Assembly: GCA_977016875.1 (NCBI GenBank)
Contig: CDRNST010000049.1
Span: forward strand, 6,138,001 to 6,202,000
Length of the DNA: 64,000 nucleotides
Direction: 5' to 3'
Source of the DNA: Pavona decussata
Lineage: Eukaryota
The notes beneath the pieces are model-generated. The model saw only the letters and a list, made by a program, of their open reading frames with translations, ran no database searches and was not told the DNA's origin. Every line of letters starts with the position of its first letter. Within the stretch, counting starts at the first letter, position 1. Position numbers and translations under genes: made by a program. Below, one piece after another: positions 20,845-23,934 of the stretch.

Positions 20845-23800
20845 ATGGCCTCTTCAAACGAATGTACCACTGAACAGCTAAACTACTTCCGAATTTGCCA
20901 TGTAACCACTAATATACTAGCTGAGGGTCTGAGAACGATTTTTAAACGGGAATGGGACAAACAGTACAAAGCAACAATGGGAGAATGGAAAGATGAGCCT
21001 AGGAATGGACTAGACTTTTACAACGGGGAGTCTTTTCGAAACCGAAGAAAGAATGCACATCTCCTGGCTACCATGAAGAATGGAGATAGAGCTGAATGGG
21101 ACTGTACAATGCTGTTTTACGCCATCCTTTACTCTGGTTGTGTTGGGCACGGTATCAACGCAACAGTTAGGACAAATGTAGATGATCTTAGAAAATTTAG
21201 GAACGAAGTATTTGCTCACACACTCCGAGACAATCTCTCCGATGCAGACTTTCACAAAACCATCAGCAACGTTTGCGGTGCTTTTCAGGTGCTTGGTCTC
21301 AATACTGTAAAACTGAAAATTCAAGACATAAAAAATCAGACAACGTTTCCTACAGAAGAGTTAACAGATGTGCTGAAACAAGTTGATAACCTTAAACATC
21401 AACTTCAAGATAAGGAAGATCAGCGACAGGTCCTCGAAGATCAGCGGCAGGTCCTGGAAGATCAGCTCCAGAAAGAAATTACCTCTTTTCTTCCACCGAA
21501 GCCTTCACACGACATCGGAACTCGCGATCGTGATGTAGCTGAAATAGCAAAACAGCTTAGGGAGCTAAAAGAAGCAAATGAAAGTAATCTAACCTATCTA
21601 TACATCTCGGGGAATCCTGGAAGTGGAAAATCGCAGCTAGCAAGTCTTGTGGCTAGTCGAGTCTTTGATGAAGGTAAAGAAATGCCATGTGGTACGTCAT
21701 TTGTGATGACTCTAAACGCCGCAAGTCCAGATTCACTTCTGGAGTCGTATGCTTTCTTTGCTCGTCAATTAAGGTGTCCGGAATATTCAATTATACAAAT
21801 CCTCAACTCCAAGAATTCGAAAATTGACGAGAAGATAGCTGATCTTAAGATGCTCATTTCCACAAAAATTGGTTTGTGCACGTCTTGGCTACTGGTGGTT
21901 GACAATGTCACTAGCATATCTTCTGTGCATGTTCATCTGCCAGACTCTGGCAACGAGGCGTGGGGAAAGGGTCAGTTGTTGATTACAACACAAGACACCG
22001 CGTCTATTCCTTTACCAAGCTCGTGCATCAATCACATCCCAGTAAGCAAAGGTATGGATCACGACGATGCCATCTCTTTATTGTCCATGCTTTCTGGCCT
22101 TCCCAACAGCCAGCAGGAAAATGAAGTTGCATTAGCACTGGACTACCAACCTCTTGCTTTAGCGAGCGCCGCAACCTTTGTCAAACAGGCTCGACAAAAC
22201 AAAGCATCATCACATTTCGGATGGAAAGAATATCTAAACGTATTACAAAAAGGTCAACGGAGAATTACTGAGGAAATTCTCACCGAAAAAAACCTTAGCT
22301 ACCCAAATTCCATGACCGCAGCCATAGCTCTAGCCGTTGAAAAGGCAATCACTTCCAAAAAAGTTGTGAATCACTTATTCTCTTTACTTTCAATTTGTGC
22401 ACCCAAACCATTAAGCCTGGATATTGCAATCAATTACATAAAAACCGTAGATAAAAATAGCAAAGATCTAGATAAAGAATTGATTTGCATGAGACTAAAG
22501 AGATGCTCACTACTCCTATTTGATGAAGACGAAAATGGTTGCTTCATTCGTGTACATCAGGTTGTACATGATGCTATCAAAACTGCAGCGAAAGACAACG
22601 TAGAGAATAATAACATTGAAATTATCAATGGCGCTATTAAATCATTCAACCAGTTTATCAACACCCTCCCACAAGAAAGTCACTCGGCATTGGACACTCT
22701 ACACGTCGTCCCGCATTTAAAAATCTTAATTTTTGTGATTGATGATGTGTTTTCAGGAGGAAGCTCATTTCAAGCCAATGATAAATGTATATCAAGCAAT
22801 TTTTGTCAAGAAAACTTTCACCAATTTGGCTTCATATGTCTTCAGCACTGCGAATTTGATATCGCAAAAATGTACCAGAAATACGCACTCGCTCTTGAGC
22901 TGGAAAAACTAGGAAGTACCGATCTCGCTGTTGCAAGGAGTTACAACAACTTAGGTGTAATTTACGGACACTCAGGCGACCTTGAGCAGGCCAAGGAGTG
23001 TCATCAACGTGCTTTAACCATAAGTCTTGAGAAGCTTGGTGCCGAACATATTGATATTGCAACGAGTTACAATAACTTAGGTTTAATTCACCAAGCCTTA
23101 GGTGACCTTGAGCAGGCCAAGGAGTGTCATCAACGTGCTCTAACTACGTATCTCGCGAAGCTTGGTGCCGAACATGTTAATGTCGCAACGAGTTACGATA
23201 ACTTAGGTTTAATTCACCAAGACTCAGGCGACCTTGAGCAGGCCAAGGAGTGTCATCAACGTGCTTTAACCATAAGACTTGAAAAGCTTGGTACCGAACA
23301 TATTAGTGTTTCAACGAGTTACAATAACGTAGGTGTAATTCACCAAAAGTTGGGTGACCTTGAACAGGCTAAGGAGTGTTTTCAACGTGCCCTAACCATT
23401 AAACTTGTGAATCTTGGTGCCGAGCATATTGCAGTTGCAAGGGGTTACGATAACTTAGGTGTAATTCACCGAGACTTAGGTGACCTTGAACAGGCTAAGG
23501 AGTATCATCAACGCGCTTTAACCATTAGACTTAAGAAGCTTGGTGCCGAACATATCGATGTTGCAGCGAGTTACAATGACTTAGGTGAACTTCACCGAGA
23601 CTTAGGCGACCTAGAGCAGGCCAAGGAGTTTCATCAACGTGCTCTAACCATTAAACTGGAGAAGCTTGGCACCGACCATATTGATGTTGCAGCGAGTTAC
23701 AATGACTTAGGTGAACTTCACCGAGACTTAGGTGACCTTGAGCAGGCCAAGGAGTTTCATCAACGTGCTCTAACCATTAAACTTGAGAAGCTTGGCACCG

Positions 23801-23934
23801 ACCATATTGATGTTGCAACGAGTTACAATAACTTAGGTTTAATTCACCGAGACTTAGGTGACCTTGAGCAGGCCAAGGAGTGTCATCAACTTGCGCTGAC
23901 CATTATACTTCACGAGCTTGTTGGATATGTTTAA
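20845..23934 (+). CDS. NLR-like STAND protein: DZIP3-type HEPN domain, coiled coil, NB-ARC-like P-loop NTPase, 8 TPR (42-aa) repeats; 1029 aa, single coding exon
   Basis: Open 3090-nt ORF. HEPN motif R119-N-E-V-F-A-H125 preceded by WDCTMLF; Walker A GNPGSGKS (21610-21633); Walker B LLVVDNV; GQLLITT; YQPLAL. TPR units SYNNLG...GDLEQAKECHQRAL with an exact 126-bp period (22939, 23065 ... 23821). Splice acceptor just upstream of the ATG (AAAG| at 20817). Confidence 0.9.
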   Translation: MASSNECTTEQLNYFRICHVTTNILAEGLRTIFKREWDKQYKATMGEWKDEPRNGLDFYNGESFRNRRKNAHLLATMKNGDRAEWDCTMLFYAILYSGCVGHGINATVRTNVDDLRKFRNEVFAHTLRDNLSDADFHKTISNVCGAFQVLGLNTVKLKIQDIKNQTTFPTEELTDVLKQVDNLKHQLQDKEDQRQVLEDQRQVLEDQLQKEITSFLPPKPSHDIGTRDRDVAEIAKQLRELKEANESNLTYLYISGNPGSGKSQLASLVASRVFDEGKEMPCGTSFVMTLNAASPDSLLESYAFFARQLRCPEYSIIQILNSKNSKIDEKIADLKMLISTKIGLCTSWLLVVDNVTSISSVHVHLPDSGNEAWGKGQLLITTQDTASIPLPSSCINHIPVSKGMDHDDAISLLSMLSGLPNSQQENEVALALDYQPLALASAATFVKQARQNKASSHFGWKEYLNVLQKGQRRITEEILTEKNLSYPNSMTAAIALAVEKAITSKKVVNHLFSLLSICAPKPLSLDIAINYIKTVDKNSKDLDKELICMRLKRCSLLLFDEDENGCFIRVHQVVHDAIKTAAKDNVENNNIEIINGAIKSFNQFINTLPQESHSALDTLHVVPHLKILIFVIDDVFSGGSSFQANDKCISSNFCQENFHQFGFICLQHCEFDIAKMYQKYALALELEKLGSTDLAVARSYNNLGVIYGHSGDLEQAKECHQRALTISLEKLGAEHIDIATSYNNLGLIHQALGDLEQAKECHQRALTTYLAKLGAEHVNVATSYDNLGLIHQDSGDLEQAKECHQRALTIRLEKLGTEHISVSTSYNNVGVIHQKLGDLEQAKECFQRALTIKLVNLGAEHIAVARGYDNLGVIHRDLGDLEQAKEYHQRALTIRLKKLGAEHIDVAASYNDLGELHRDLGDLEQAKEFHQRALTIKLEKLGTDHIDVAASYNDLGELHRDLGDLEQAKEFHQRALTIKLEKLGTDHIDVATSYNNLGLIHRDLGDLEQAKECHQLALTIILHELVGYV

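Follow-up and report, generated by a model that had tools for sequence, protein, structure and literature searches.

Does a tandem repeat array at the sensor end of a coral receptor-like gene diversify by gaining and losing whole units, and do the amino acid replacements within it fall where a ligand would be bound? The question is raised by a 64,000-nucleotide stretch of the stony coral Pavona decussata, hereafter called the window (GenBank assembly GCA_977016875.1, contig CDRNST010000049.1, positions 6,138,001 to 6,202,000 of the forward strand), in which a gene at positions 20845..23934 (+) ends in an array of tetratricopeptide repeat (TPR) units. A preliminary description of this DNA had proposed that the array is diversified by recombination and that this changes recognition specificity. 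Our analyses moderately favour the reading that the array is the sensor end of a HEPN-NTPase-TPR receptor belonging to a family that gains units and varies on its predicted binding face, the window copy being an older and eroding member. The proposal thus finds support in the family, in which both unit turnover and groove-face replacements are seen, but not in the window array itself.

Architecture of the window gene

The only long open reading frame (ORF) of this neighbourhood, 20845..23934 (+), codes for a protein of 1029 amino acids (aa) in a single exon. The ORF list, Pfam and the homologs indicate the composition HEPN (DZIP3 type), P-loop STAND NTPase and TPR array, and sequence comparison shows that the homologs are collinear and share the same start Met. 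The protein thus has the tripartite order of effector (HEPN, aa 110-167), NTPase (aa 227-584) and repeats (aa 696-1029).

The DZIP3/hRUL138-like HEPN match (PF18738; 21172..21345, +) scores 25.6 bits in Pfam, slightly below the cut-off of 27, and PF18738 also appears in the precomputed Pfam list. An Rx5H motif, RNEVFAH, is found in this region (21199-21219). The putative STAND-type P-loop NTPase (21523..22596, +) was delineated from the NTPase part of NF040586, a bacterial NTPase-TPR family of NCBIfam (E = 3.7e-21), from weak profile matches to NPHP3_N, AAA_16, nSTAND3 and NB-ARC, and from motifs read in the sequence. The latter are a Walker A motif, GNPGSGKS (21610-21633, aa 256-263), a Walker B-like LLVVD (21886-21909, aa 349-353), and two motifs that resemble those of NB-ARC domains, LITTQD (21976-21996) and QPLALA (22144-22164). 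NB-ARC itself (PF00931) reaches 13.5 bits on the window protein, below its gathering score of 23.5, and nine out of 12 family members match it weakly, with E = 8.6e-6 at best. No solved NTPase-domain structure was found by sequence with the single protein or with a 12-sequence profile, and, judging from its profile matches and motifs, we regard the domain as a divergent STAND NTPase. The array is matched by both TPR_12 (327 bits, cut-off 30.1; E = 1e-99) and TPR_10 (236 bits, cut-off 27.5; E = 8e-72).

The nearest named proteins are gene models of Porites and Montipora, 56-61% identical, annotated as 'uncharacterized' or 'Nephrocystin-3'. PADLOC returned a generic TPR hit alone, and Rfam had no match within the gene region. 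By its sequence, the window gene belongs to a family of intracellular STAND (NLR-like) proteins that is large and arranged in tandem clusters in this stony coral. Its members consist of a DZIP3-type HEPN domain at the N-terminus (a predicted RNase effector), a P-loop NTPase switch with affinity to NB-ARC in the centre and a superhelix built of KLC-type TPR units of 42 residues.

The TPR array of the window gene

One array was identified by Tandem Repeats Finder, at 22929-24035, with a period of 126 bp, 8.8 copies, 84% matches, 0% indels and a score of 1421. Seven complete units of 126 bp (42 codons) of the kinesin light chain (KLC) type occupy 22930..23811 (+), as indicated by this program, the reading frame, TPR_12/TPR_10, AlphaFold2 and Foldseek; they are in frame with the ORF, and their starts are given by 22930+126k. 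The exact 126-bp period noted in the preliminary description is therefore borne out, without indels, but the eight units counted there are seven complete ones and an eighth (23812..23934, +) that is cut at codon 40 by the stop TAA (23932-23934), as established from the translation and from contigs of other individuals.

Near-identity is likewise limited to units 6 and 7 (23560..23811, +; unit 6, 23560-23685; unit 7, 23686-23811), which share 123 of 126 nucleotides in the unit alignment (in the register starting at 23569 and 23695 used previously, four of 126 differ). The remaining pairs of units have 74-89% DNA identity, and the mean amino acid identity of the array is 73%. Units 6 and 7 have the same 42 residues, as each of the three substitutions between them (23607/23733, 23613/23739 and 23658/23784) is synonymous. 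This pair had been taken as a sign of recent duplication or conversion. However, its dN and dS (nonsynonymous and synonymous changes per site) are 0 and 0.117, respectively, and the N-terminal part of the gene has a dS of 0.13-0.20 (dN/dS 0.22-0.43) relative to four paralogs located 40-190 kb away on the same contig, with which it shares 87-89% identity. The duplication is thus not recent, since a dS of ~0.12 matches the age of the paralog split. For the window's other units, the closest relatives sit in other paralogs, and the longest exact internal repeat of the array is 55 bp.

As for the scaffold described as invariant, GDLEQAKE recurs in all eight units, but QRAL reads QLAL in unit 8 of the reference allele. 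Among the window's own units, 23 of the 42 columns are variable, the top eight being unit positions 32, 42, 34, 14, 10, 3, 13 and 24. About half of these hottest columns belong to the SY..LG...H.. stretch on which variation had been thought to focus, and the other half lie outside it.

Unit turnover in the gene family

A six-frame search of the 602-Mb genome with the non-TPR part of the gene yielded at least 75 matches, which form tandem clusters on several contigs. In one of these clusters (G000:C44:511-761 kb), no fewer than 15 members of the family, with 57-60% identity, are arranged head-to-tail with a spacing of mostly ~16-17 kb.

The number of in-register 126-bp units differs markedly within the cluster of the window gene, with seven plus one in the window and 33, 19, 10 and 8 in the four paralogs. 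The 33-unit array of L013 has a higher-order period of seven units, with 95% identity at lag 7, and contains an exact internal repeat of 1178 bp. In the 19-unit array of L014 (G000:C49, 6065-6068 kb), the period is of two units, with 95% identity at lag 2, and the exact repeat is of 213 bp. The longest exact internal repeats of the paralogs are thus 1178, 213 and 134 bp, compared with the 55 bp of the window. Similarly, L013 and L014 have a mean internal identity of 84% with runs of identical units, and the 73% of the window is the lowest of the five arrays. Because the sister genes hold 8-33 units, higher-order repeats and exact duplications, gain and loss of units are real and recent in the family. 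Within the cluster, the array of L013 (G000:C49:5964500-5973500; 2110 aa, 33 TPR units, array at 2755-7172) is the most dynamic one.

Units are also being inactivated. In L016 (G000:C49:6010500-6019500), a stop lies inside array unit 9, with about ten more TPR units behind it, and this array is partly inactivated, like the tail of the window gene. Other family members also have in-frame stops. The subtype of unit present in the window (at least 80% DNA identity) was found at the five loci of the cluster and in one broken copy on contig C195 only. Thus, gain, loss and inactivation of whole units are ongoing in the cluster, without a recent part played by the window array.

In a wider set of 84 family proteins, taken from several coral assemblies (among them those of Porites lutea and P. 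evermanni), units number 5 to 16 per protein, and 12 of the proteins contain identical unit pairs. The mean internal identity reaches 90% in one P. lutea protein (P0096).

Replacements at the predicted binding face

The AlphaFold2 model of aa 640-1029 has a mean pLDDT (predicted local distance difference test) of 84, with values above 90 across the TPR units, and consists of regular pairs of 17- and 19-residue helices. The array is preceded by a cryptic and degenerate pair of capping helices (aa 651-695; 22795..22929, +), which correspond to helices 12-29 and 34-49 of the model and are predicted with low to moderate pLDDT. The best Foldseek matches are consensus TPR (CTPR), KLC1/2 and LGN TPR structures.

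The canonical TPR positions 2, 5, 6, 9, 12, 13, 33 and 34 constitute the concave, ligand-contacting face (PMC1261162), and we fixed this set as the test positions from that source before inspecting the data. Changes were then counted by parsimony on a tree of 58 unique units from the five arrays. The concave set has 89 nonsynonymous and 11 synonymous changes (dN/dS 2.06), compared with 121 and 92 elsewhere (dN/dS 0.37; Fisher p = 3.6e-9). Alignment of the units and calculation of dN/dS, which had been suggested as a check, thus revealed an excess of replacements at the concave set at the level of the family. Taken relative to the global dS, the dN of the concave set is 1.23; when individual sites are compared with the global synonymous rate, TPR position 13 is beyond neutrality after Bonferroni correction (p = 0.035), and positions 2 and 9 are so nominally.

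When the helix boundaries of the AlphaFold2 model are used, unit positions 42, 3, 7, 10 and 14 give the variability of helix A a helical moment of 0.59 (permutation p < 1e-4); no significant moment was obtained for helix B. The most variable positions recur in a second clade (the C44 and C143 arrays) and within the 84 family proteins of several corals. In a collinear pair of genes from another coral assembly (L026/L027, 97.4% DNA identity), pN (the nonsynonymous differences per site) is fivefold higher in the TPR part than in the N-terminal part (0.048 vs 0.0098). Replacements are thus shown to be concentrated at positions equivalent to TPR 2, 5/6, 9, 12, 13 and 33, on one face of helix A, and the TPR scaffold is under clear purifying selection. 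The expectation that the variable sites face the groove agrees with the helix A set, which matches canonical concave positions; it does not account for unit position 32, which is on helix B.

The most serious alternative is neutral turnover. According to this explanation, the arrays are unstable, minisatellite-like coding repeats whose unit number drifts, and their variable columns are exposed residues under relaxed constraint. It would fit the overall dN/dS of the 58 units, 0.56 (103 synonymous and 210 nonsynonymous changes), as well as the modest 1.23 obtained with the global dS and the outcome of the site-level tests, most of which are non-significant once corrected, a single site surviving. 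It would also fit the L026/L027 pair, whether allelic or paralogous, in which the pN/pS of 1.53 in the TPR part is not significantly different from the 0.74 of the N-terminal part, and the frequent stops that cut arrays, as in the window and L016, which are expected if length is weakly constrained. In contrast, neutral turnover is at odds with the approximately sixfold enrichment of nonsynonymous over synonymous changes at positions chosen a priori, with the recurrence of the same few most variable positions in 84 proteins and with the purifying selection on the scaffold. Moreover, the variability moment concerns one face of helix A only, and the exposed, convex positions of helix B vary less than that face. 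We regard neutral turnover as rather unlikely, because variability is lower on the convex than on the concave face, but it retains more weight than the other alternatives discussed below.

Erosion of the 3′ end and variation among individuals

Three-frame translation of the DNA that follows the stop codon revealed decayed, out-of-frame TPR relics (23935..24195, +), namely a ninth unit, another that is partly deleted and what is left of the usual C-terminal tail of the family. These relics give blastn matches of 68-78% to paralog units, and the intact ends of the paralogs served as a comparison. The 3′ end of the window gene has thus lost about two units through frameshifts and stops. The relics are immediately followed by runs of (TA)n, of T and of 17 G bases at 24195-24260, and read contigs break at 24193-24277. 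A 21-bp repeat with 4.9 copies lies 300 bp beyond these runs (24523-24624).

Other individuals are represented by short assembled Logan contigs of public runs, which we compared with the region. A T/G polymorphism at 23891 (L/R) distinguishes them from the reference, the G found in other individuals restoring the scaffold Arg of unit 8. An extra C after 23921 is present in three runs, in one of them mixed with the reference form; this allele extends the ORF by 19 codons before a stop inside the decayed ninth unit. The 3′ end of the window gene is thus both polymorphic and eroding.

Contigs of other individuals also cross unit junctions (run X4, record 31, 23598-23753, across units 6/7; X4, record 30, 23236-23563; run X1, record 7, 23316-23526). 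A class of X1 contigs with a depth of 246 links 23656 back to 23065 with seven extra letters, out of the unit register; it may correspond to a paralog or to an alternative arrangement of units in another individual. Contigs from a metatranscriptome and a probable RNA run are confined to ~20719-24000, and runs X1 and X3, whose library type is not on record, have contigs on both flanks as well. We considered a splice site at 20719 and rejected it, as the loose end of the contigs resembles the upstream window sequence with several mismatches, which indicates diverged sequence and no intron.

These data bear on a second alternative, that the window copy is a decaying, non-functional gene, a pseudogene in the making, and that its array pattern is a fossil of the past dynamics of the family. 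The ORF does end in unit 8, with about two more units disrupted by frameshifts and stops behind it, and the reference allele combines a scaffold R-to-L replacement with a 1-bp indel, neither of which is found in other individuals. Internal identity is also lower in this array than in any other of the cluster, and decay occurs elsewhere in the family, as in the broken copy on C195 and the members with in-frame stops. Nevertheless, the frame of 1029 codons is intact, the HEPN motif is kept, as are the Walker A and B motifs, and dN/dS of the N-terminal part relative to the paralogs is 0.34-0.43. Only synonymous changes separate units 6 and 7; under neutrality, three changes without a replacement would have a chance of ~0.01. 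Finally, the contigs of RNA libraries cover the gene and leave its flanks uncovered, although the other two runs cover the flanks too. On balance, loss of function of the window copy appears improbable.

That the array length or unit order is an artefact of mis-assembled repeats can practically be discounted: high-identity arrays are prone to mis-assembly from short reads (PMC12222747), and a second assembly in which the gene is identical matches at 99.99% over 22.5 kb and probably derives from the same individual, but the window units differ by 11-26% and are easily placed, and contigs of other individuals cross their junctions, that of units 6/7 included. Given its probable origin, this second assembly, the only other contig with an identical protein, was not retained as independent support.

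Proposed mechanism

The reading that we favour, a sensor array that gains units and varies on its binding face in the family, may be cast as the following mechanism. Whole 126-bp units are duplicated or lost, presumably by unequal crossing-over or replication slippage with the units in register. The variable face of helix A would line the concave groove, by analogy with solved TPR-peptide complexes, and this groove would bind a ligand, so that unit number and groove residues would together set specificity. Binding of the ligand might free the NTPase for oligomerisation and thereby activate the HEPN effector, a predicted RNase. In the window copy, the duplication of units 6 and 7 would date back approximately to the split of the paralogs, the identity of the two units at the protein level having been preserved since. 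We infer that the diversification process is adaptive.

Besides the overall dN/dS, the single surviving site and the L026/L027 comparison already set out in favour of neutral turnover, a number of points count against this reading. The window copy is an old, comparatively static array without recent rearrangement. Fungal repeats of high internal conservation are defined by more than 85% identity over a minimum of 100 aa (PMC4986451); the window array falls short of this, with its mean of 73% and an identical stretch, units 6-7, of 84 aa, and L013 and L014, at 84%, are close to it. No tract exchange between paralogs was detected: exact matches shared between arrays are of 39-90 bp, compared with 70-131 bp for the N-terminal parts. 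As no exact tract exceeds those of the N-terminal domains, gene conversion between paralogs was discarded as a source of variation. The long exact repeats of L013 could in principle be assembly errors, L026 and L027 both have 14 units, and allelic variation in unit number was not shown with the short Logan contigs, in which no unit-skipping joints were seen. Regarding selection, recombination between units can inflate signals of this kind and is not taken into account in the parsimony count. The orientation of the groove was deduced from canonical TPR positions and helical periodicity rather than from model coordinates, and the canonical set leaves the highly variable unit position 32 of helix B unaccounted for. 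Finally, the distribution of contigs suggests transcription and is compatible with an unspliced transcript of ~3.3 kb, but is no proof of it.

If turnover of units and hypervariability of the groove do tune the specificity of these receptors, this would explain how the repertoire is diversified. Corals carry hundreds of NLR-like genes and, to our knowledge, have no adaptive immunity. Animals would then join the fungi and brown algae in which such a mechanism has been documented, and the residues at TPR positions 2, 5/6, 9, 12 and 13 would be indicated for population and binding studies of disease resistance, symbiont choice or allorecognition. For such work, the sister genes with 33 and 19 units are better objects than the window locus. 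A bolder idea is that the coral STAND-TPR arrays of this family change the number and order of their units fast, in the germ line or even somatically in clonal colonies of great age, and so generate individual-specific repertoires for allorecognition or for the recognition of symbiont or pathogen strains. We consider this a long shot; if it is true, fungal het-d/het-e would have a counterpart among animals.

Other features of the window

The window gene contains a second length-variable coding repeat. The linker between the HEPN and NTPase regions has 2.5 copies of a 21-bp in-frame repeat that codes for the heptad EDQRQVL (21415..21466, +; Tandem Repeats Finder). It is probably a coiled-coil linker, and the heptad is present in about one to five copies among homologs.

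Six kilobases upstream of the receptor gene, an ORF of 251 aa at 14261-15016 (+) codes for a protein with an HSP20/alpha-crystallin domain (E = 3e-32). Small heat-shock proteins have been reported as an expanded family in corals. Another ORF, of 592 aa at 58630-60408 (-), contains RCC1 repeats (RCC1-like domain, E = 1e-43). In addition, the window harbours an apparently non-coding 69-bp tandem repeat at 219-747 (7.7 copies, 87% matches) and a tRNA gene at 56798-56870 (+; Rfam RF00005, 45 bits).

Comparison with known systems

The gene family and its architecture are already known in corals. In the part of the coral survey considered here (PMC10236652), NB-ARC domains are mostly paired with TPR, and many of the proteins have N-terminal DZIP3-like HEPN domains. 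These STAND proteins of Acropora, Porites and Pocillopora resemble the product of the window gene in domain order, host group, tandem clustering and large family size. That part of the survey and the Acropora NLR repertoire cited in it deal with domain combinations and gene amplification rather than with turnover of TPR units or hypervariability of codons. In our literature search, no study of these TPR arrays in corals at the level of units or codons was found.

The closest solved folds are the TPR domains of kinesin light chain and LGN/Pins (PDB 3NF1, 6SWU and 4WND; Foldseek E ~1e-11 to 1e-12), with TM-scores (template modelling scores) of up to 0.82 normalised by target and a sequence identity of 24-30%. 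KLC and LGN/Pins bind extended peptides in their concave channel. They differ from the coral proteins in that they have no NTPase or effector attached, their units are diverged and their genes are single-copy and conserved.

Fungal NLRs (het-d/het-e with WD40 repeats; Podospora NB-ARC/NACHT-TPR and ANK proteins; PMC4986451, PMC12222747) combine a STAND NTPase with tandem repeats of equal length, as is the case here. They also display differences in repeat number and hypervariable positions on the concave side, and kinesin light chain, whose fold type the coral array matches, has served as the model for their TPR domain (PMC4986451, PMC12222747). The effector of the coral proteins is HEPN, as opposed to HET, PNP_UDP and the like in fungi, and the host is an animal. 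Fungal arrays have an internal identity of >85%, allelic polymorphism of repeat number and exchange of repeats between loci (PMC4986451, PMC12222747). Because its identity is below the fungal threshold and no exchange between loci was seen, the window array should not be classed with the het-d/het-e type. The resemblance to these repeats put forward in the preliminary description is thus confined to the family, in which units turn over and the concave face varies; it is also at this level that the hypervariable, positively selected binding face of fungal NLRs has its equivalent.

The NB-ARC-TPR proteins of Ectocarpus (PMC3341825) are similar in having 42-residue TPR modules after the NB-ARC domain, inactivated relic modules next to functional ones, and clustered genes, and diversifying selection has been reported for their repeats (PMC3341825). 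In Ectocarpus, however, the units are encoded by individual exons and are shuffled as exons (PMC3341825), whereas the coral array is one uninterrupted exon, and change must therefore arise in it by in-register recombination or slippage.

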